From NCBI GenBank assembly GCA_002104945.1, contig MCFH01000059.1:124001-188000 (forward strand): a DNA stretch of 64,000 bases. The letters run 5' to 3'. Positions 25,409 through 60,455 of this stretch are shown in pieces (positions within the stretch are counted from its first letter, which is position 1; each line of letters begins with the position of its first letter). A program made the translations under genes and the position numbers. The notes below the pieces were generated by a model, which was given only the letters and a program-made list of their open reading frames with translations, was not told the DNA's origin and made no database searches. Source of the stretch: Piromyces finnis finn (Eukaryota; Fungi; Neocallimastigomycota).

Positions 25409-26854
25409 ATGGATAATACAGAATTATTTTATAAAGAATTAAATAGTACTTGTAATCCTGATACATTATTAAAAATTGCAAAAAAAGGAATTTTTTTATA
25501 TGAGCCTTTATTTACAAATAATAAAATAAAAGATCATGAAAATGTAATTGAAATCAGTATATTAGCTGGACAATATTTTATGATATTTAATAGAAAGCAG
25601 TATCAAAAACTAGTAGAATTAATTTCTCGGAAAGATTTCACAATTTATCCATATCTAAATAATCATTATATTATTTTTAATATATTTATTATAAATAAAT
25701 ATTTTATAGAACAATTAATGATCGAAAAAAATAATGATTTTTTATTATTAATACATGAGCATTTATCTAATGAGATAACAATATTATTGTATTTATATAA
25801 GTATAATTATATATCCACTAAAATATTTTATTCATTTTATTATTATGGTAATAAACATAATTATTTTAATTTTGTATTTGAGTTGTATGAATATTTTTAC
25901 CATAATGAATTTAAAAATTTGTTTGAAAATACATTTGATGCTCTCGATATTACTGGTAAATCTAAAATAATTTCTGAAATGTTACTTTTTTATGGAAGAG
26001 ATATTAATATATTTAAATATTGTATAAAGAAGATTAAGCAATATCATTTATATATACGATATGATTATTTTCGAATACCTTTACATTTTCCAATAGAGTA
26101 TTTGAAAGAATATAATGATGATGTATTTTTTCCAAATGAATTGTTTGTTACTTGTGAAGATAAAAAAATTGAAGAATTTATAAATACATTTTTTTCTGAT
26201 TATTTCATTCTTGTATTAAGTAATAATTATAATGATAAATATAAATGTTATGAAAAATTTTATTCAAGATATAATATTGATATTGACAAACTTTATAAAT
26301 TTAAATATTATAAAAAAAAGGATATAAATTTAGATTATATATATAATTCAGAAGAATATAAAAATTTCTTAGAAGGAAATAAGAATTTTAAGGGAATAAC
26401 ATATAATACAAGAGATAATATTATAAATTTAATTAATATAAAAAAAGAAAAGTACAAATACTATAAACTTAAAAGAATGTTTATAAAAAAGAATTTTAAC
26501 AATTTATATTTTGTTAAAAAGTACTTGAAAGAGTATAATGAACTTGAAAAAATATTAAGTGATCCTGAATATATTTTAAGTCAAAATATTGAAATTTGCA
26601 TTAATGAATATTATGTTATGTTATTTTGTTGTTCAATTTCAATGATTCACAATAATTTTAATTATTTTATTATTAAAGCATTATTATATAATATTTTTGA
26701 TAGTTCTTATTTTGATGTACTTGATAAGAAACTTGTTTTTTTTAAGTATACGTGTGAAGAACCATATATTAGAAAAATATTTAATATATTATGTTCAACT
26801 CCACATGAAGTATTTAATAATTATATTTTAATAAAAGATTATAATCCTAATTAA
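25409..26854 (+). CDS. Intronless Tyr/Phe/Lys/Asn/Ile-rich hypothetical protein (ORFan, possibly viral origin)
   Basis: 481 codons open in ~80% AT DNA is very unlikely by chance. No signal peptide and no recognised domain. Confidence 0.7.
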   Translation: MDNTELFYKELNSTCNPDTLLKIAKKGIFLYEPLFTNNKIKDHENVIEISILAGQYFMIFNRKQYQKLVELISRKDFTIYPYLNNHYIIFNIFIINKYFIEQLMIEKNNDFLLLIHEHLSNEITILLYLYKYNYISTKIFYSFYYYGNKHNYFNFVFELYEYFYHNEFKNLFENTFDALDITGKSKIISEMLLFYGRDINIFKYCIKKIKQYHLYIRYDYFRIPLHFPIEYLKEYNDDVFFPNELFVTCEDKKIEEFINTFFSDYFILVLSNNYNDKYKCYEKFYSRYNIDIDKLYKFKYYKKKDINLDYIYNSEEYKNFLEGNKNFKGITYNTRDNIINLINIKKEKYKYYKLKRMFIKKNFNNLYFVKKYLKEYNELEKILSDPEYILSQNIEICINEYYVMLFCCSISMIHNNFNYFIIKALLYNIFDSSYFDVLDKKLVFFKYTCEEPYIRKIFNILCSTPHEVFNNYILIKDYNPN

Positions 26855-27061: not shown

Positions 27062-27520
27062 ATGGATTTGCTATTAATATCGTTGATAACTTTTACATTT
27101 TTTGCTAATTATATTTTAGCGAAAATAGATAAAAAGGAGTTCTGTTTGCATAACTATAATGGTATCACAAAAATAGTTGATCCCTTTTATATCAACTCTA
27201 AAAATGAAACGATTTATTTTGATACTATTGAAGAATATTCGAAATACATTGGACCTACATGGTTTGGCGTAGCCTATTGTGGTAATAATACTATTGTTAA
27301 TAATGTAGGACGTTATTTTAAATATATTGGAGATGATGTTAATCCATCAACAGATATTACACCAACAGAAATAAGCGATAAATCAGATGAAGCAGAAACT
27401 GAAGGAGTATTTGAAGAAGATGACATGTACAACGATGATGCAAATGAAGTTTTTGTTGTTAATAAAGTAAGTTCCAAGAAGCAATCTAAAGTCAAAAGGT
27501 ACATGAATTTTGTTAAGCGA

Positions 27521-27551
<31 letters not shown>

Positions 27552-30500
27552 GTGATAATGGTAATGATAATGGTAATGACAATAAAAATTTTTTGAATCT
27601 ACATACCAAAGAAGAATTTACAAATTATTATAGTAATCTTTATGATAAGTTGATGGATCCTGAGAAGCCATTAAAATGTGTTCCATTGAATAGTGTTAAT
27701 CCAGCGTACAATCCCTATCATCCTTTATTGATTAGAACAACCAATAGAGAAAGAGCAAATATTATAAATAATATGGGTACTGTGTATGGAGGTAATAGTA
27801 ATAAAATAATGGAATTTATTAAAGATAGTAAAGATATACAACCATGTGGAATTGTTATGAAGATGAAAGATTCATCTATTTCGTGTAGCGTTCGAATTTC
27901 AAATACAATTGATGAAAGTGTGACTATTACAGACAGCAATGGGAAAACTTATCATCAAGCATATGGAGTTGTTTATAGTGATACTAATTCATTTTCTGAT
28001 GATATTAATACAGTTTTAGAATTGTCAGTATCTTCGACAGAGAGTAAATCACTTTCATATTCCGAATCCGATACGGTTTCTAAATCAGCTGAAAGAGTGC
28101 TTTCATATACAAAATCCAAAGGTAAATCTGTTACAGATTCAAGTGAAGACACTCACACTGATACTCACGAGAGCTCTTATGCTTATACAGAAAGTGAAGA
28201 ACATTCTCATGCAAGAAGTGATGGTGGTGAAGTTGTTGATGAGACTAATTGGAGTAAAAGTGAAGAAATATCACATGTTGAAGAATATAGTCGAATGGAA
28301 AGGAAGGATTATGAAAATGCCAAATCAAAAGTAAAAAGAAATGATGTAGTATCGTTATGCAAACGAGGAGGTATTTGTATTCCTTGTGATGTTGTTGATA
28401 CCGTTACAAATGTAGTTGGTACTGCTGCTAATATAGGCTTGCAAATACAATCTAATAATTTACAAAAAGAGTCTAATGATATAGCCAGAAATTCCACAGA
28501 AGCTGCTTACATAGCTAATGATATCGCTAGAAATTCCACAGAAGCTGCTTTTATTGCTAATAATATAGCAAATAATGCCAATGAGATTGCAAAAGACGCT
28601 AATGCTGCTTCATGGAAGGCAAATAATTTAACGTTACAGTCGATAGAATCTCAAGAAGATATAGCAAGGAAAGACAGAGAATTGCAAAGAGAACTTAATG
28701 AACTTAATGCACAACAAGAACTTGCTATTGCATTTGCAGGTACAAGAACTACAAGTGATAGTTATAGTACGGTTAAAAGTGAAGGTGGAAGTCATAGTCA
28801 GTCTCAAAATTGGTCTGATACCTATACCGATTCTACAGGTATTAGCAACACCTGGACTACATCTGATGGATATTCCGATTCACATACTCAAGGTCATTCG
28901 GAAACAACTACTGAAGAAAGTACTCGATCTGATTCTATTTCACATTTATTAACAAATACATTTACTAAAGATAAAGGTTGGAGTTTTGAATCTTCTAATA
29001 CTAATTCAGCATCCAATAGTTATTCTTACGGCAAATCAAATACAATATCCCATACAAATGATATTTCCATAGACCAGTCTATTGAAGTATCGGCTGAGAG
29101 ATCATATCAGAAATCGGTTTCAAGATCTAACACCGAAGAACATAGTAAAACTCTCGAATTCCATATTCCAGATAATGGTTGTTACAATCTAACAGCTGTT
29201 CCTTTATTTAGATCAGAAGTAAATATTTGGGCGTGTGGTGACTATGATATATACGGAAATTATTATACACGTTTTCAAAAAACCATTCATCCAATTGAAT
29301 TAACAGATTTTGCCAAAACACCAATTGAATGCAATAAGGAGCAAATTGATCCAGTTATTATTGATAACAATTATCAGAATAGAAATTATATTCCTGATAA
29401 CGGCATGCCTAAAAACACACTAATTTCAGGTCAAGTTTTAAATAAAGGCAATAAAATTAAATCACGCAATGGTAAATATTATTTTGGATTATTGGATGAT
29501 ACAGGAGAATTAGCTTTATGTAAAGGTGAGTTCAAAAAAGAAAATATTGTATGGAGTAATGGTATAGATTTTTTGAAAGATGATAAATACAATCTTAAAT
29601 TTAAAGTAAATTATAACGGACATTTGGTTGTTACAGCAAAGAATATATTTTCAAGATATAGAGTAATGGATACTGATCAAAATAATGATGTAAATATTAA
29701 TATTAATAATAATTCCAAGTTATCAAAGCGTCGTAGTCCATTAGATAGATTATCTTCATTACTAGATAATAAAACAACAACAACAACGACAACAACTTCT
29801 ACTACTACAACAACTACAACTACAATTAATACTACTACAACTAATGAAACTAATTCTATTGCTATTACAACATCCACAATCGAAAATACAAATAAAAATA
29901 CTAGTAAAGAGAGTTCAACATCTTCATCTAATTTAATTGTTTCAAAGGCAACCGAGAATTTAAGTAGCTTAATATTTTCTAGTACTTATTCTACCACATC
30001 TAATGAACCTACATCGACTGCTGTTAACACATCTACTAATACAAGTAGTTCTGAACCAGTTAAAATGGCTAATTATAGAAATACCGAGGAATTCATTATA
30101 TGGGATTCATTACCTAAAGATTTACCATTCAATGTAGGCTACTTAGATGGATCGGGATACTCATTGGTCTTAAATGACGACGAAAATACCGATTATTGCA
30201 CTTTAACATTATATGATGGTGTAGGTGTAAAAATTTGGGAAATTAAGCCAGGGCAGTATGATTATATAGGATATGCGTTTCCAAGAGAATATAATATGCC
30301 ATTAGCATTCGAAACTAAAAAAGCTGAAAAAGATATTAGTAAGTATGATTTTCACAATGTTATTAGACCGGAAGTAAAAGATGTATTTATTCATAAAATG
30401 AGCTTCACTTGTGATACAAAGATGCGCGAAAATGAGGCGTTGGTATCAAGTAATGGCAAATATAGATTTTATGTACAACCATCAGGTAATTTAGTTATTA

Positions 30501-33500
30501 AAGAAAATTCCAGAACGATGTGGTCTTCATTAACTGCTAATATTGAAATATTTGAGGCACCATATATTTTGTCATTCTCACCATTGGGCGAACTATTATT
30601 GAGAGATAAAAATAAGTTTTTAATATGGCACACTGTAAACGGAGATTCATTTAAAAATACAGAAAAGATTGAAGACATTCGTAAATTTTCCTTAATATTA
30701 TCAGATGATGGGGAATTATATATCGAGGATAATTATCATAATATGTATTGGAGTTCATGGCCTGTAAGATTATATAATCAACATATACGATATGTTGAGC
30801 CAATGATTTATGATATATCCATATGTAAGGAAACTATAAGAAATAAATACATCTACGATCTCTTTTCCAATCCAAATATTTATAATTATTATGAAGATCC
30901 AGATGACTCAACTACCTATGTTCGTAAATACTATGTTAATAATTTATTACCAAATGAGTCATTGCTTTCAATATACCATGCTACTTTAAATGTTACAGAT
31001 ACTGAAGTTGTATTTTATTATAAGTATAAAGATAAAATGCATTCAAAGGAATTGGCCAGTTGCAGTAAAAATTCGAATGTTAAGGAATTGAAATTAGAAA
31101 AAAATGGTTTATATTTGTATTGTAATGATAACACCTATAAAACTATTGCTATGGTACCAGAGAATCAAAAATATTATCGTCTTTCTATTGAGAAAAGATA
31201 TAAAATGGATTATCCTGATTTAATGATATACAACACCAAAACTAAGGAGTTCTTATGGGGATTGAATCCAGTTAAATTTTTGTATAGTGTTGTTCCCAAT
31301 AAAACTAAATATGGTGAATACAATAGAATTGTTACTGCTAATACATTTACAACATTTGATAGATTAATATCTTATAATGGTGGTGGAAATCATGTGTATA
31401 TGTCCAATTCTCATGGATTAGAATTGAGTAATTCAGCATACACTGAATTTAAGAGCTTATCCCTATTGGATGATAACTTTTATATTAATGATGAAATAAT
31501 TATTAAGAATGAAAAAAATATGGAACTTTCTTATGATGGTATCAATGATAAATTAATAATCACAAATGATGCCGATACATTGTGGGAATTATTTGGAAGA
31601 AAAAAATGTAATAAATTTATTTCTTCTGATGAAAATTGTAATACTCTATATTCCTTTAGTGAGTTTTACAATGACGAAAATGAAAAAACTTTTCATTTAG
31701 CTTCATATTGGCTATTATATAAAAGTAATACGTTTTATATTTTTAATATAATAGAGTATCTTAAAACCATTAATGAGCCAATATTTTCAATGAAACTAAA
31801 TGAAAATGGTGACATTACATTAAACAATAATAAATATATATTTCACAAAGAATATTACAAAAAGGATCAATATTACGAATTAATTACCAATAATTATAAT
31901 TTAATATTAAAATCAAGTACTGGAGAATATAAATGGGCACTTGGAGATATCTTCAACCGTGCCTATAATGCAGATATCTTAAAAATTGGAGATTCTTTCA
32001 AAGAAGGTGAAATGTTATTCTGTGATGATTATTCTCTAATTATTCTTGGCGGTAAATTATTGTATAGAGACCACAAAACATTTAATGAAGTCGACATTTT
32101 AAATTTAAAAAATAACTATGTTTCAAAATTAGCTATAGGATCTAGAAGTTTAACATTCTTTGATAAAAGTAATGAACCAATTTATGCGATTATGTCACCT
32201 GATAGTGTTGATTATCCTGACAGCTGTCTTAAATGTGATAAAATCAATAAAGGAGTGTATTGGGATGACGGTAATGGAAATTCATTATGGAGTTATCCTA
32301 AGAATTTACCAAAAACCGATACTACTACAATTACTTCAACTACAACCACAACAACAACTACTACTACTACCACTAGCATTATGCAAACTCCTCAAACTAT
32401 TGTTTTTACTACACATGTTACTAACTACTCAACCGAATATATAACAGAATCACAAACTAGTATAGCCACTAAAACTAGTTATAGTTATGCAACTTATACC
32501 AATGTAAGTTATCAAGGAAGTATTGGATCAAAGTATTACCTAGGTATAAATGAATTAAAAGAATATGTCACACTTGAAGCTAAATATGGTGGAAATAATA
32601 AACAGCCAAGCAAGTATATTAAATGGTTAATTAAATCTGAAAAGGAACCTTCATATATGCATATAGTAAATAATAATGGTGAAATATCAAATTATTGTTT
32701 AGACGTAGGTAAAAGTAAAAACAAATATTCTTACTATTTAAGAATTAGTAAATGTTCAGAAGACACTTACTTATTTAAATATAATGTACCATTTACTGAT
32801 TATGAAAATTCAAAAATAAATAATCCAAATAATATTATTGTTTATAAAAACGATAATTCTTTATTTACTAATAGTAACGGTGTACCATATTGTATTTATT
32901 ACAGCGATACATTGCGTATAGAAGAGTGTAAAGATCCTAAAGATTATGAAAATTTCAATTGGAAAAAATACAATAATGGCTATTTTACTGAAACTTCCAC
33001 AAAGACTAAATTACAAACTTCTACTGAATATCTTACCAAGAGCACAGTAGTACCAACCATATTAACTTCAACAATAACTTCAATTTTATTACCTACTTTT
33101 TCACCAACTACGTCTACTACAACGAATATAAGTAGTATTACTACTAAGGATATAAATCCTACACAATCCATTGATTTACTATTTATTCCTTTAACCTTTA
33201 AAGGTATACAAAATGGAAATTCCAGTATTTTCTTAAGTGTTTCAAAATTAGGAACAAATGAATCTTTTGATATGAGAATATCTGACAGCTACTATACATG
33301 GTTTGTTACTTCAACTACAAATCCTTCTTATCTTTATCTATCTGAAGGTATTTCAGGAAATATTGGAAATCCAACAAATTATTGTTTGGATTTAGGCGAC
33401 TTTGTTCATAATGAAAAGGATAACTATAATTATTTACGTATCGAAAATTGTTCTAATGTAAAGTATAAATTTATGTATAATGCTTCAGATAATGCTAAAT

Positions 33501-33658
33501 ATGGAACAATTAATGTTTACGATATCAATGGTAATCCTCTTTCTATTAATAATGACTTTATGTGTATTTACTATTCAATGACACCTCGTGTCGATAAATG
33601 TGTTGATCCATCCCTTAATACTAAAATGGGTTGGGAAATGTCTCTAATAAAAAATTAA
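27062..33658 (+). CDS. Secreted 2198-aa multidomain protein: candidate aerolysin/ETX-MTX2-like pore-forming region, bulb-type lectin repeats, two ricin-B-like C-terminal domains
   Basis: Signal peptide; several KR/RR sites; alternating S/T-x arms at aa ~274-410 and ~560-699 ending in LEFHIPDNGCYNL. B-lectin motifs (LISGQVLNKGNKIKSRNGKYYFGLLDDTGELAL; LVSSNGKYRFYVQPSGNLVIKENSRTMWSS). Duplicated W..T..PSY....NYCLD(V/L)G....LRI.C units; Thr-rich linkers. Confidence 0.75.
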
Positions 33659-42052: not shown

Positions 42053-44148
42053 TTTGGTATGTTACAGCAAAAGGTTCTTTTATTGGAGATGCTTTTAAGA
42101 GAGCAGAACTTTTTGAGTTGACGGATAATGAAATACCAACTTTTGATATAAAAATATCAGATGAAGAATTTAAAGCCTTAACATTGGAAGGTCAAAAAGG
42201 TGCAGCAGCTGCTAATGTTCCAGAGGAAGAAGAATTAAAAATTAAAGATGGTGTATTAAAAGTTGATTTAAATGGGTAAAATACAATAGAATATTATTTA
42301 ATAATAATAAAAGTTTAACCGAAAAATATTTTTTATAAATTTTTTTATTTAATGGTCGAAAAAATATTAAAAAGTTATTCAAGATACCTATAATAAATTG
42401 TTCACTTTTATTTTGTTAATATATATAATATTTTTATAAAAAAAAATTATGATATTGTATATTCAAATTAAAATTTATAAAATAAATTAACCCAATTTTT
42501 ATTTGTATTTAATATATATTAAAAAAAAAAAAAAAAAAGAAAAGAAAAAATATTTAAAAAAATAACTCTTTCTATTGGTGGTAATTCCTCTCGCGGTTTC
42601 GGTAAACAAGGTTATAATATCAAAATTAGAGGTAAAGGAGATTTATACGGACGTACTCAAATAAGACTTCGTCCAGATGCACGTGAACCAACTTATTTAA
42701 GATCAAAGTTATCTTGTGATATTCATAATCGTTTAGGATTATCATCCATTTCATCTAATTATGCCACATTATACATTAATGATGAATTTATGGGATTATA
42801 CGTTTTAATGGATTCAATTAACTTGTCTTGGATAAAATATGTCTATGGTGAAAATGATACTACCAGTTTATATCAATGTAAAAATGTTAAAAATGATTTA
42901 TCTCTTGAAAAATCAGCTACAGGTTGTATTAATAAAAATGAAGAAGTTTTGGATAATACCCAATGGATCGAGTTTTTAACTACTATTAGTAAGGCACAAT
43001 CTGCTGAAGATCTTGAAGCAATTTTTGATATTGATACTTTTTTAACTGAAATGGCATTTGAATATTTAGTTGGATCGTATGATCATTTTACAAATTTTGG
43101 TCATAATTATTATTTATATAAACCTCAAAATGATAAATGGAAAATTCTTTTATACGATTACGATAGTGAATTTGGTCAAGAAATTGCCATGGGTATTAAT
43201 AGAGTTAAAAATAATCAAGGCAATAATAGCACGGATTACACTAGTTTTACTTTTGCCCAAACAACCAGAGATATTCACTTGGTAGATGTTTTAATTTTAA
43301 ATAATTCCACTCGTTTCAACACTATTTTGAAGAATGTTGTTGAAAAAGTTTTTAATCCAGCTACCCTTTTCCCAAGAATTGATGAATTGAAAGAAATGAT
43401 TAGACCTTATGTTGAAAAAGATAAAATTCCAAATGAACAAGGTAAATACCCAGGAAAACTTAATGAAAAATCGGATCATTACTCTTTAGCTCAATGGGAT
43501 GCCAATTGTGAATTTACAAATGTTAAAAGTATTCATAGTGGTACCAAGGCATATGGTTTAAAATATTGGATTCTTGCTAAATATAGATATGTTTGTCAAT
43601 CCCTTAAAATGGAATGTGACTCTACCTATTTAGATGAAAATTACGCCTATTCTATAGATACTTCTGTAGAACTTTCAGGTGAAGATATATTTTCTGGAAT
43701 GGATAATCTTCTACCACCACCACCAACAACAACAACAACAAATCAAACTCCAACAGAAACTAAAATTGAAAACCCAACTCAAACCACTACTAATGTCATT
43801 TCAAAACCATCAGAAAATACAACAACAACATCATCATCATTACCCCCAACATCAACACCAACATCAAAGCAATATCAATGTTGGTCTGAACTCATAGGTT
43901 ATCCATGTTGTGATCCAAAGAATAATGTTGTCTATTCACATGATAGCTATGGTGAATGGGGATATAATTTTAAAACACAAATGTGGTGTGGACTTACAGC
44001 ATTTGAAGAACATGAAAATGATGAAGAATGTTGGTCGGAAGAATATGGTTATCCTTGTTGTTTGGGTTGTACCGTATATGAAACGGATGATCAAGGTCAT
44101 TGGGGTTATGAAAATAACCACTGGTGTGGTATTCAATCATTTTGTTAG
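42053..44148 (+). CDS. cotH: CotH kinase-family protein with two C-terminal fungal dockerins (cellulosome component); intron 42276-42539; true start not found
   Basis: Exon 42053-42275 (WYVTAKGSFIGDAFKRAELFELTDNEIPTF) splices to KITLSIGGNSSR..KQGYNIKI..LRPDAREPTYLRSKL..YINDEFMGLY..YDHF..HNYYLY..YDYD. Thr linker; dockerins CWSELIGYPCC..WGY..WCG and CWSEEYGYPCC..WGYENNHWCG. Confidence 0.9.
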
Positions 44149-53665: not shown

Positions 53666-55133
53666 TACTTGTACTTTTTTTCTATACCATTTTAATTTTA
53701 AGTAGCATTATTAATAATGGTCAGTATATTAAATCCACAAAATAAAAAACACAAAATAAAAAACAAAAAATAAAAAACACAAAATAAAAAAAAACGTGTT
53801 GCTTTTAAAATTGACGTATAATATCATTATATTATTAATAAGTTTAAGAGTTCTAGTTAAAGATAAATCATTAAAATAGCTTGTATCATCATATTATTTA
53901 TTGTTACTTTTATAATAAATCATTAACAATATCTTTTCAAAGATATTACAAAAGAAATTGGTATTAATAATAAAATTACATCCACCATAATATAATAAGG
54001 AATCCTATTAATATATTAATAAACAATTAAATTTTTATAGTTATTAGATTTGGTTATAAAATATACAAAACATTTAAATTTTTTTTTAATATAATTCATA
54101 ATATGTTAATTCCGCATTATTAATCATTTTTAAGTTACTTCTATTATATATATCCAAATATAAATTCTTTTATCTTCAATATGTTAAAAGTCTACTCTTT
54201 TGTAATAATTATTTATAATTATTTATTGAATTTGTGTATATCTATTATATATTTTATAAAAAATATTTAAAATGTTTCAGGAATAATTTCTTTTTAAAAA
54301 AATAAATTAATTTATTAAACGGTAATTAAATAACGATGTAAAAAAAATTGTAGAGGATGGAAAATCGACTTTTTTCTTTAAACCTTAATTATTATAATTA
54401 TCACTTTTAATAAAAGTTTTTGTATAAGAATAAAAAATTAATGTGGAAATAACTACTAATTGATGTCCTTTGAATTAGCAACAGTTTTTATAATTTATAG
54501 ATAAATATTATTATATTATTATTTTTATATGGAGTATAGCTTAAAAATATAATTTTATTTTAAATACTTTATAAATTTCGTTTTAATTGAATTAGGTCAT
54601 TGATAATAATTAATAATGATAAAAAGAATTAAAAACCTCTCTTTTATTTATACTGAACTATTAATATATCGATGAATTATAAACATATATATGTTATATA
54701 TATTAGACTAGTATAATTTAAATATAAAATAAACTATAATAATTCATTTTATTATATATAATCTTTAATATGAAAAAAAAAAAAAAACATACACATTTTT
54801 TTTTTTTTGAAGATCTAGATCTAAAAAAGTTTTAAGTAGATAAAAATAACGAACACAAACTAAAAATTAATTAAAACTAATACTTTTATAATATATTTAA
54901 GTGGTAAATCTTATTTTTACGATTATTCTAAGAGTGCTTGAATCCATCTTAGGGTTAACCCTTAATACTTTTATAAATAAAATTAATAGATTTGCTATGG
55001 ATTATATTTATTACAATTGATGTTTAATATTACAAATAATATAATGTTGAAAAAATTATAAATAGTCTGAATTTTTTCTTTAAAAATCCAAAAAAAGTAT
55101 ATATTAAAAAGAAATATATATATATAAATAAAA

Positions 55134-56513
55134 ATGAAATACCTTAGTTTAACTCTCTCATCTATTCTCTCCATTACATATATTACTGCTGCTCCAACTT
55201 ATACAAGTAGATGTGGTATTGGATATGGTGAATGTGATCCTGGCTTTTGCTGTAGTGAATTTGGTTGGTGTGGTCAATCTAATAGCCACTGTTTAATTTC
55301 AAATGGTTGTCAATCTGAGTTTGGTAAATGTATTGGTGATATTTCAACAAATGGTCAATGTGGTCCACAAAATGGTTATACTGTATGTCCATCTGGTAGA
55401 TGCTGTAGTGAACATGGATGGTGTGGAACAGAAAGTATTCATTGCGGTACAGGATGTCAATCTGAATTTGGTCAATGTAATAATTCTTTACCACCAACTT
55501 TAATAACAAGTACCGTCCCAAAAACCACCACCATACCTAGTACTCCTAAAACTACAACCACAACTAAAGCTACTACAACCAGAACTACTACAAAAAAGAC
55601 TACTACTACAACTAAGGCTACAACATCTAAAGCTACAACCACTAGAACGACTACAACTAAAACTAGTACATCTCCTACATCAATAACTAGATGTGGTAAA
55701 GGATATGGTGAATGTAGTCCAGGCTATTGTTGTAGTAAATTTGGATGGTGTGGTAAAGAAGACAGCCATTGTAAACTTTCAAAAGGATGCCAATCTGAAT
55801 TTGGTACATGTACCGGACTTTCTACTAATGGTAAATGTGGACCTAAGAATGGTGACACTGTATGCCCATCCGGTAAATGCTGTAGTGAACATGGATGGTG
55901 TGGAACCGAAAATGCTCATTGTGGTTTTGGATGCCAGTCAGAGTTTGGAAAATGTTCTACCCTTAAATCATGTTCTCAAAAAAATGCTTATGGAACTATT
56001 GATAAAGAAGCATTACCAAATGCACCATATATTTGGAGCTTCCTTTTAAGTAAAATTGGAAATGTTTATGGTGCTGCAGGTATGATTGGAAATCTATATG
56101 CTGAATCTCGTCTAAGATCAAATGATCTTGAAGGTATTTATGAAAGAAGTCTTGGAAAAACTGATGAACAATATACAAAGGATGTTGATAATGGAACATA
56201 TAAAAACTTTATATCTAATTCAGCTGGATATGGTTTAGTACAATGGACTTCAAGTAAACGTAAACAGGGCCTTCTTAATTATGCCAAAGAACAAAAAAAG
56301 AGTATTGGAGATCTTCAAATGCAACTTGACTACTTCTGGATAGAACTTAATAAGAATTATAAAGATGTTCTTAGTGTTTTAAAAAGTGCTATATCAGTTA
56401 AGGAAGCTTCTAATAAAGTCGTTTTAGAGTATGAAATTCCTAAAGATCGAAGTGACAGTGTATTAAAAAAGAGAGCCAATTTTGGAGAAATGTTAAAATT
56501 AGCTTGTAATTAA
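55134..56513 (+). CDS. Secreted protein: four CBM18 (hevein) chitin-binding modules plus C-terminal phage-tail-lysozyme (Phage_lysozyme2-like) domain
   Basis: Signal peptide; 4x C..CCS..GWCG....C..GCQSEFG.C; Thr/Lys linker; C-terminal IWSFL..GAAGMIGNLYAES..GYGLVQWT..RKQGL..QLDYFWIEL..AS..V..EYEIP..R. Confidence 0.88.
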   Translation: MKYLSLTLSSILSITYITAAPTYTSRCGIGYGECDPGFCCSEFGWCGQSNSHCLISNGCQSEFGKCIGDISTNGQCGPQNGYTVCPSGRCCSEHGWCGTESIHCGTGCQSEFGQCNNSLPPTLITSTVPKTTTIPSTPKTTTTTKATTTRTTTKKTTTTTKATTSKATTTRTTTTKTSTSPTSITRCGKGYGECSPGYCCSKFGWCGKEDSHCKLSKGCQSEFGTCTGLSTNGKCGPKNGDTVCPSGKCCSEHGWCGTENAHCGFGCQSEFGKCSTLKSCSQKNAYGTIDKEALPNAPYIWSFLLSKIGNVYGAAGMIGNLYAESRLRSNDLEGIYERSLGKTDEQYTKDVDNGTYKNFISNSAGYGLVQWTSSKRKQGLLNYAKEQKKSIGDLQMQLDYFWIELNKNYKDVLSVLKSAISVKEASNKVVLEYEIPKDRSDSVLKKRANFGEMLKLACN

Positions 56514-60158: not shown

Positions 60159-60455
60159 ATGACTAAATTAACTGATGAAGAAATAGATGATTTTTTCATG
60201 AATTCACCTCTATTTGAAGAGGACAGAAAAAAAGAAAAAGAAGAAATAGAAAGGTTAGAAAAAATGTTGATTGGTAATGTAAATTGTCCTATCGTATGTA
60301 AAAGATGTAAAACAAAAAATATTGAATTGAGATCACTTCAAATTCGTCGTACTGACGAAGGTCCTACCTTAGTATATTATTGCATCAATTGTAATAAAAT
60401 AGCAGGTTTTCCTGGAAAGGAGAATGAAGATTTTGTAGAAGATTGGATTTATTAA
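60159..60455 (+). CDS. Minimal TFIIS C-terminal zinc-ribbon protein, NCLDV-type (TFIIS/RPB9-C family)
   Basis: 98 aa: CKRC...LQIRRTDEGPTLVYYCINC retains the acidic DE hairpin. In-frame stop 12 nt upstream of the ATG; no N-terminal zinc ribbon (unlike Rpb9/Rpc11/Rpa12) and no TFIIS domains I-II. Confidence 0.82.
   Translation: MTKLTDEEIDDFFMNSPLFEEDRKKEKEEIERLEKMLIGNVNCPIVCKRCKTKNIELRSLQIRRTDEGPTLVYYCINCNKIAGFPGKENEDFVEDWIY

Follow-up and report, generated by a model that had tools for sequence, protein, structure and literature searches.

It is well established that genes for enzymes degrading bacterial cell walls have been transferred to eukaryotes and that fungi secrete modular muramidases. 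Horizontally acquired hydrolases of this kind include GH25 lysozymes (Metcalf et al. 2014, PMC4241558) and enzymes of a ladybird (PMC7807722) and of archaea (PMC12352652); in each case, a bacterial or phage wall enzyme is reported to have moved into a peptidoglycan-free organism living among bacteria. The same situation is encountered in Piromyces finnis, an anaerobic gut fungus (Neocallimastigomycota), in which a gene located within a 64,000-nucleotide stretch of contig MCFH01000059.1 (assembly GCA_002104945.1, positions 124,001 to 188,000; hereafter, the window, in whose coordinates all positions are given) encodes a protein that joins four chitin-binding CBM18 (hevein) domains to a lysozyme domain of the PF18013 (Phage_lysozyme2) family. 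Compared with those transfers, this gene differs in the family involved and in the re-fitting of the domain with a host lectin array. The gene was noticed in an initial reading of the nucleotide sequence (below, the original prediction), which described it as a chitin-binding array fused to a phage-tail lysozyme.

The catalytic domain is 50-59% identical to those of PF18013 endolysins from phages and prophages of gut Clostridia (e.g. AUV56383.1 of Faecalibacterium phage FP_Lagaffe, WAK78968.1 of Acutalibacter phage Fontainebleau and the prophage lysin of Butyrivibrio sp. M55), with which it shares the GNLYAES and GYGLxQWT motifs and the fold. Phage endolysins are intracellular, are released via a holin, combine two enzymes (the additional one being Amidase_2, CHAP or NlpC/P60) and carry bacterial wall-binding modules (SPOR, SH3_3, LysM or PG_binding_1), whereas the fungal protein combines a predicted signal peptide with a eukaryotic CBM18 array, a Thr-rich linker and one catalytic domain. 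Given its fungal contig, the signal-peptide-like N-terminus and the lack of a holin nearby, the fungal gene is endolysin-derived rather than a working endolysin. The founding structure of PF18013, the N-terminal domain of phi29 gp13 (3csr, 3csq, 3ct5; gp13 residues 1-159), has the same all-alpha lysozyme-like fold but is only 22-23% identical; in gp13, which is located at the tail tip of the virion, the domain is fused to an M23/LytM peptidase, whereas the fungal domain belongs to the endolysin-type subfamily.

Two further groups resemble the window protein in overall design. The secreted fungal muramidases (GH24 of Trichophaea saccata, GH184 and GH25) similarly combine a signal peptide, a wall-binding module, a linker and a lysozyme-fold domain with a single essential Glu (predicted to be Glu324 here), and GH184 is a structural neighbor of gp13, although it is a different family (PMC10394673); however, these enzymes use an SH3-like binding domain and occur in Dikarya, in contrast to the hevein/CBM18 array of an anaerobic chytrid-grade fungus. 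The amphioxus proteins BbtPGRP1-3 share with the window protein the succession of signal peptide, hevein-like domain, linker and peptidoglycan hydrolase as well as a comparable Ser/Trp/Trp/His-type binding motif, but contain an amidase instead of a glycosidase and one hevein unit instead of four, and the host is an animal (PMC4610682). As argued below from comparative sequence analysis, the window protein is probably a chitin-anchored antibacterial muramidase derived from a domesticated prophage endolysin domain.

Domain architecture

The gene is a single uninterrupted open reading frame (ORF) that joins eukaryotic-type and bacterial-type parts; as originally described, it is intronless and encodes 459 amino acids. 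The features are as follows:

55134-56513, plus strand: complete intronless coding sequence of the CBM18x4-PF18013 protein, 459 amino acids plus stop (ORF list, translation)
55134-55190, plus strand: predicted signal peptide, amino acids 1-19, likely cleaved between A19 and A20-P (hydrophobic N-terminus, A/AP motif)
55212-55331, plus strand: CBM18/hevein domain 1, amino acids 27-66 (Pfam PF00187; 8 Cys; S-x-F-G-W...H motif)
55359-55478, plus strand: CBM18/hevein domain 2, amino acids 76-115 (Pfam PF00187; 8 Cys; S-x-H-G-W...H motif)
55488-55688, plus strand: Thr-rich mucin-like linker, amino acids 119-185, 67 residues (Thr content, tandem repeat, weak Pfam Mucin match)
55692-55811, plus strand: CBM18/hevein domain 3, amino acids 187-226, copy of domain 1 (Pfam, pair comparison, motif)
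55836-55955, plus strand: CBM18/hevein domain 4, amino acids 235-274, copy of domain 2 (Pfam, pair comparison, motif)
56019-56480, plus strand: Phage_lysozyme2 catalytic domain (PF18013, similar to the phi29 gp13 N-domain), amino acids 296-449 (Pfam, PHROG, AlphaFold2, Foldseek)
56103-56105, plus strand: Glu324, predicted catalytic acid (conservation; alignment to gp13 Glu45)
56109-56111, plus strand: Arg326, fungal-lineage-specific substitution two residues past the catalytic Glu (8 of 8 fungal versus 0 of 195 bacterial and phage sequences)

The Pfam matches to both families are far beyond chance: Chitin_bind_1 (PF00187) is found in four stretches, with E 4.7e-33 and 113.6 bits against a cut-off of 27.8, the best stretch (amino acids 75-115) being domain 2, and PF18013 is found at amino acids 296-449, with E 1.4e-25 and 90.6 bits against a gathering score of 28.2. 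The C-terminal 171 amino acids (55998-56510) match PHROG 20388, annotated as endolysin (E 5e-51); an NCBIfam scan of the protein retrieved no informative family. The N-terminus consists of Met-Lys, a 17-residue hydrophobic stretch (mean Kyte-Doolittle value 1.33) and an A/AP site. It looks like a signal peptide, and a signal-peptide-like N-terminus with the A/AP site is common to all seven fungal relatives; this part of the original description probably stands, and secretion of the protein is what we infer from it.

All four CBM18 units consist of about 40 residues with exactly eight Cys and retain the sugar-binding motif S-x-[F/H]-G-W-C-G-x5-H-C intact. In hevein, the sugar-binding residues that correspond to this motif are Ser19, Trp21, Trp23 and Tyr30. 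His occupies the position equivalent to Tyr30, as reported for BbtPGRP3 (PMC4610682). The duplicated hevein pair noticed in the original prediction is a true tandem duplication, units 1-2 and 3-4 being identical in 67 of 90 residues and at 73% of the nucleotides. The intervening linker region, with 36 Thr in the 69-residue stretch of amino acids 119-187, contains a 15-nucleotide tandem repeat at 55560-55670 (Tandem Repeats Finder, period 15, 7.2 copies), shows a weak match to the Pfam Mucin family and is probably O-glycosylated. The GC content of the ORF is 0.35 (0.14 at third codon positions, GC3), compared to about 0.20 in the flanks. A TATAAATA motif is located at 55057-55064, about 70 nucleotides 5' of the ATG, and is followed by an A-rich leader; it carries little weight because the genome is about 80% AT.

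Relatives and phylogeny of the lysozyme domain

A word search with amino acids 285-459 returned 1043 proteins, the best 120 of which were examined in detail. The top seven of the 1043 matches (55-63% identity) also carry CBM18, and two of these come from Piromyces sp.; no ortholog closer than 63% identity was present among the word-search matches. The remaining matches among the best 120 are bacterial and phage multi-domain lysins (53-61% identity), the partner domains being Amidase_2, CHAP, NlpC/P60, SH3_3, PG_binding_1, LysM or SPOR. In total, more than 1000 lysins of bacteria and phages match the lysozyme domain, at 50-61% identity. The eukaryote-type, i.e. CBM18-bearing, proteins among these 120 are exclusively anaerobic-fungus-like, in a database whose fungal coverage is not established. 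None of the 120 contains both PF18013 and four CBM18 units; only one or two such units occur in the other members of the fungal family. The homology to bacterial proteins is limited to approximately amino acids 300-452, and the fungal sequences share short flanks that are not found in bacteria.

A scan of GTDB, with one genome per prokaryotic species, yielded 516 loci with the domain. The best 80 of these (50-59% identity) belong mostly to Lachnospiraceae, Oscillospiraceae, Butyrivibrio and unclassified Clostridia, and originate from goat, sheep, deer and human guts. The closest phage records are Faecalibacterium phage FP_Lagaffe (53.5%), Dulem virus 37 (53.2%) and Acutalibacter phage Fontainebleau (51.6%). 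In three of four close examples (FP_Lagaffe, Fontainebleau and the prophage of Butyrivibrio sp. M55), a holin adjoins the homolog. The close relatives (52-59% identity) are lysis-cassette endolysins, not tail proteins, and this context makes the domain endolysin-type, whereas the versions found in tail lysins and tape-measure proteins (Staphylococcus and Rhodobacter phages) are only 30-36% identical. The designation 'phage-tail lysozyme' in the original prediction has therefore to be dropped; 'phage tail lysozyme' is only the name of the Pfam family. The homolog of Butyrivibrio sp. INlla14 lies 3' of a reverse-transcriptase gene, as it does in FP_Lagaffe, where a reverse-transcriptase/Avd-like module of the diversity-generating retroelement type is located just 5' of the PF18013 endolysin (L081 323-2240); a reverse-transcriptase gene 5' of the homolog was observed in phage Fontainebleau and in the rumen Butyrivibrio prophage (L011 22-534, INlla14).

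In a quick tree of 205 rows (the query, 7 fungal and 113 metagenomic sequences, 80 from named genomes, 2 from phages and 2 distant outgroups), the eight fungal sequences form one clade, with a Shimodaira-Hasegawa-like approximate likelihood ratio test (SH-aLRT) value of 99 and a stem length of 0.48. In a careful tree of 69 rows rooted on the tail-lysin and tape-measure outgroups, the fungal clade (support 100/99) lies inside a group of gut Bacillota sequences, with several other Bacillota and phage sequences branching outside this group; the support for the nesting is moderate (84/84). Sequence P0014 appeared as the sister of the fungal clade in the quick tree (SH-aLRT 62) but was not recovered in this position in the careful tree, and was rejected.

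The recipient clade is nested in the donor diversity, the domain is linked to native genes, and its composition is host-like (GC3 0.14-0.22). The simplest reading of these sequence relationships is that a single catalytic domain passed once from a phage or prophage of gut Clostridia to an ancestor of these fungi, and that gene duplication came afterwards. The direction would be from bacteria or phages to the fungus because the domain is present in hundreds of prokaryotic species as opposed to a few proteins in one fungal phylum. Thus, the acquisition from rumen bacteria or phages envisaged in the original prediction is borne out by the 50-61% identity, the position of the strongly supported fungal clade among gut Clostridia and phage sequences and the fungal contig. 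The bacterial partner domains (amidase, CHAP, SH3, SPOR) have been replaced by the host CBM18 cassette, with only this one catalytic domain kept.

Lysin domains very close to those of Clostridia phages were also detected in metagenome-assembled genomes (MAGs) labelled Succinivibrionaceae (L002, L004, L062) and Bacteroidales (L012, L032, L076, L077) and in MAGs of Planctomycetota (L013, L038, L060). The domain in the Bacteroidales MAG L077 is nearly identical to the metagenomic sequence P0111. These Gram-negative occurrences suggest either mis-binned phage contigs or a wide distribution of the phages. The labels Succinivibrionaceae, Bacteroidales and Thermoguttaceae on some of the MAGs were considered too unreliable to point to a donor, the sequences being close to those of Clostridia phages.

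Conservation of the active site and fold

The catalytic motif NLYAES was located at amino acids 320-325, with Glu324 encoded at 56103-56105, exactly as originally given. This Glu is one of 30 invariant columns in a 40-sequence alignment, along with the GYGLxQWT motif, and reaches at least 95% conservation across 195 bacterial and phage sequences. When the profile of the 40 sequences was compared with the PDB, only phi29 gp13 was matched (E 2.4e-8), and the alignment pairs GNLYAES with GNMQSES of gp13, such that Glu324 corresponds to gp13 residue 45. For gp13, Glu45 has been proposed as the catalytic residue, and mutagenesis showed the equivalent Glu41 of GH184 to be essential (PMC10394673). 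The AlphaFold2 model of the lysozyme domain (pLDDT 96, pTM 0.91) yielded, in a Foldseek search of the PDB, the gp13 N-domain structures 3csr and 3csq as the sole significant matches (E 2.6e-4, probability 1.0, TM-score 0.67-0.73), and the best matches among viral models were gut Siphoviridae lysins (TM-score 0.87-0.93). GH184 was not matched in the profile or single-sequence searches of the PDB, and the Kionochaeta GH184 structure 8b2e is a distant Foldseek match (E 3.5, query TM-score 0.47). In the single-sequence phmmer search of the PDB, interferon-gamma chains (1fyh, 1eku; E 6e-4) ranked above gp13; this match (amino acids 376-426, residues 92-142 of the 171-residue query) was not reproduced by the profile or fold searches and is judged to be a chance similarity of helical segments.

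Of the 48 positions with at least 95% conservation in the 195 bacterial and phage sequences, the fungal copies retain 41-45, Glu324 among them, and the changes at these positions are conservative. The ratio of nonsynonymous to synonymous substitution rates (dN/dS) of the domain is 0.25 at dS 0.24, as estimated from the single fungal pair P0005/P0023, the deeper paralogs being near synonymous saturation (dS 0.8-1.4). The conserved residues together with this level of purifying selection argue for a functional enzyme. One lineage-specific change is Arg326, beside the catalytic Glu and present in all eight fungal sequences and in none of the 195 bacterial and phage ones, which have Gly or Ala there; it may reflect a change in specificity or an adaptation to pH.

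Such a change bears on the possibility that the lysozyme-fold domain has been repurposed for chitin or chitosan-like polymers, acting in the remodelling of the fungal wall itself (during growth, branching and zoospore release) or in attack on other fungi, with CBM18 as an ordinary substrate-binding module. Chitinases are indeed typical partners of CBM18, the cleft of gp13 binds N-acetylglucosamine (GlcNAc) units (PMC10394673), lysozyme-fold chitinases exist, and the long fungal stem together with Arg326 could mark a shift in specificity. However, the changes relative to the peptidoglycan-degrading relatives are few and conservative, as described above, and neither the sequence nor any significant fold match connects the domain with GH18, GH19 or GH23 chitinases (E 1.0-1.4, TM-score 0.36), the GH23 chitinase of Ralstonia A-471 being among the weak fold matches. 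Moreover, these fungi already possess GH18 chitinases with CBM18. There is no positive support for a chitinase or wall-remodelling role, and we consider it improbable. In line with the original prediction, the domain stands apart from eukaryotic GH19 and GH23 enzymes, with no Pfam match to these families and only the weak GH23 chitinase fold match, at E about 1.

The CBM18 array and the likely role of the protein

A search with amino acids 20-284 retrieved mostly proteins of anaerobic fungi (Anaeromyces robustus, Neocallimastix lanati, Piromyces finnis, Orpinomyces). The original proposal of a fusion to host CBM18 domains agrees with this result, the nearest relatives of the array being CBM18 proteins from Anaeromyces, Neocallimastix, Piromyces and Orpinomyces. 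Similar arrays in anaerobic fungi are joined to leucine-rich repeats (LRR), CotH, polysaccharide deacetylase, CAP, serpin and GH18, and further to phospholipase A2 and peptidase S9 (proteins P0135-P0254). The array therefore is a promiscuous cassette of host origin, and, with payloads so varied, its shared job would most simply be to fix secreted proteins to chitin, i.e. the fungus's own wall, which suggests a general cassette for wall or surface display. It can be likened to the dockerin system, an example of which, CotH combined with CBM10, is encoded in the window at 42790-44148.

The following scenario can be proposed. An ancestor of the anaerobic gut fungi would have taken over the PF18013 glycosidase domain of an endolysin with two enzymes, encoded by a phage or prophage of gut Clostridia. 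The bacterial partners of this domain would then have been lost, and the domain itself would have come to follow a signal peptide of the fungus, a CBM18 cassette of the host and a flexible Ser/Thr linker. Subsequently, the gene would have diversified into a small family, with the CBM18 pair doubled to four units in this member. The protein would be secreted and held by its four hevein domains on GlcNAc polymers, chiefly the chitin of the fungus's own wall but possibly also bacterial peptidoglycan, while the long, glycosylated linker would let the catalytic domain reach outward and Glu324 would cut the N-acetylmuramic acid-GlcNAc backbone of peptidoglycan in bacteria that are in contact with the thallus or colonize it. 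The occurrence of the same cassette on many unrelated payloads lends indirect support to the tethering to the own wall. As for the activity, the gp13-like domain of enterococcal PrgK is a muramidase with hydrolytic, non-anhydro products, according to mass spectrometry of muropeptides (bioRxiv 10.1101/2024.02.15.580431).

The same enzyme and target would be compatible with a freely diffusing bacteriolysin in which CBM18 serves as a bacterial-wall-targeting module that replaced the lost SH3, LysM or SPOR domains. Wheat germ agglutinin and other hevein lectins bind GlcNAc in the walls of Gram-positive bacteria, and in the fungal protein every wall-binding and partner domain of the bacterial lysins is missing, with CBM18 exactly in its place. 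Furthermore, the hevein-like domain of BbtPGRP3, whose Ser/aromatic/Trp/His motif is shared by the CBM18 units, increased the amidase activity on Lys-type peptidoglycan about five-fold; this gain required the chitin-binding Trp residues, and free chitin cut the activity by about 30% (PMC4610682). Against this, the CBM18 arrays of anaerobic fungi also carry payloads such as LRR, CotH, serpin and CAP that are unrelated to peptidoglycan, so that the common factor is more likely the fungus's own chitin, and a protein with four chitin-binding units would probably be held back on its way through a chitin wall. A diffusing bacteriolysin therefore deserves serious attention but seems unlikely; it is compatible with wall display, and the array of a wall-displayed protein may also act on bacterial walls.

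Another role to be considered is nutritional, namely the digestion of bacterial wall debris or dead cells for amino sugars and peptides. The same evidence for a peptidoglycan hydrolase applies, the rumen is rich in bacterial biomass, and the sequence does not separate killing from scavenging; however, the ORF-poor flanks contain no visible linked genes for uptake or catabolism, and anchoring through CBM18 fits contact-dependent action better than bulk digestion, which makes this possibility very improbable.

Several points weigh against a wall-anchored antibacterial muramidase derived from a prophage endolysin. With respect to the origin, the fungal clade sits on a long stem (0.35-0.48) and, in both trees, in a polytomy with gut Bacillota and phages, so that the exact donor is not singled out. 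With respect to the activity, the long stem and the presence of Arg326 beside the catalytic Glu leave room for a change of substrate, and CAZy had given the gp13 family no number as of 2023 because functional information was missing (PMC10394673). Furthermore, the crystal complex of gp13 holds GlcNAc units (PMC10394673), which implies that chitin-type ligands fit the cleft. Finally, a single-enzyme lysin that acts from outside may be weak against the Gram-negative bacteria of the rumen.

Earlier reports and implications

Anaerobic gut fungi are a very small minority beside the bacteria of the rumen, and little is understood of how they persist there; work on fungal defense has so far focused on secondary metabolites. 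A secreted, chitin-anchored enzyme derived from an endolysin would offer a testable enzymatic mechanism against the surrounding bacteria, and a phage lysin rebuilt with eukaryotic targeting modules is relevant to enzyme antibacterials and to the design of feed muramidases.

The transfer has already been mentioned, in one sentence, by Ciach et al.; a transferred lysozyme is not mentioned in the main texts of the horizontal gene transfer survey of Murphy et al., the dating study of Wang et al. or the bacterial co-culture study of Swift et al., and the main text of the latter contains neither lysozyme nor peptidoglycan nor CBM18. Three aspects of the present case were not found in the literature searched: the catalytic family lacking a CAZy number in 2023, the hevein-array partner and the prophage-endolysin donor pool. 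The missing number (PMC10394673) creates an annotation blind spot for gp13-like catalytic domains, such that CBM18-PF18013 proteins would be reported simply as CBM18.

This blind spot might concern a published expression study. In co-culture of Caecomyces churrovis with Methanobacterium bryantii, protein 407913, annotated CBM18-CBM18-CBM18-CBM18 (PMC8665504 Table 2 and supplement), ranked first among the induced genes of the CAZyme class on three of the five substrates; the top-ten lists in question also include peptidoglycan hydrolases of the GH73 and GH25 families (PMC8665504). A CAZy-only annotation of the window protein would read the same. Judging from its CAZy string, protein 407913 could be an ortholog of the window gene. 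It is tempting to speculate, albeit with low confidence, that the CBM18-PF18013 family is a prokaryote-induced, wall-displayed lytic defense of anaerobic gut fungi that CAZy-based annotation has hidden; if so, the 'CBM18 induction' in co-culture studies would be the induction of a domesticated phage lysin.

Genomic context

A gene that combines eukaryotic and bacterial parts calls for consideration of an artefact, i.e. bacterial or phage contamination, a chimeric assembly or a decaying pseudogene. The exact protein has no record in the public gene collection, and the gene is isolated within some 17 kb of AT-rich sequence that contains few long ORFs; there is no second copy of the lysozyme domain within the window. 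However, a single ORF runs uninterrupted from the eukaryotic into the bacterial-type portion, and both the conserved active site and a dN/dS of less than 1 speak against an artefact. The GC3 of the lysozyme segment (0.137) is like that of the remainder of the gene, with values of 0.15-0.22 in six other fungal family members, and the GC content of the window is about 15-38%, typically around 20%. The proteins encoded in the window include ankyrin-repeat, SH3, SNF2/DEAD-type helicase, CotH+CBM10 (fungal dockerin), PQ-loop and TFIIS-ribbon proteins; this set of neighbors is of eukaryotic type, and its CotH-dockerin gene is a typical feature of Neocallimastigomycota. The CBM18-PF18013 fusion recurs in the genome of Piromyces sp. 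E2 and in several independent metagenome contigs. Given the fungal neighbors, the host-like GC3 and the same fusion in other assemblies, contamination or chimerism is very unlikely and the contig is truly fungal; the artefact explanation is effectively refuted, its residual probability being minute.

Some of the related contigs show peculiarities of their own. In Piromyces sp. E2 (KZ151248.1, L086 6535-7970), a run of N lies directly 5' of the paralog P0004, and because of this upstream assembly gap the public model of P0004 is 'partial' and lacks a start Met. The metagenome contig L090, which carries P0125, has a G/C-rich, homopolymer-like tail at about 1467-1506, as opposed to the AT-rich rest, which is probably an assembly or sequencing artefact. 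Elsewhere in the window, two long plus-strand ORFs (27062-33658, 2198 amino acids; 25409-26854, 481 amino acids) have no Pfam match at E <= 0.001. Finally, the plus-strand ORF at 60159-60455 (98 amino acids) contains a TFIIS-type zinc ribbon (PF01096, E 1.5e-10); it probably represents a small RNA-polymerase subunit or a TFIIS-like exon and provides further evidence of the eukaryotic nature of the contig.

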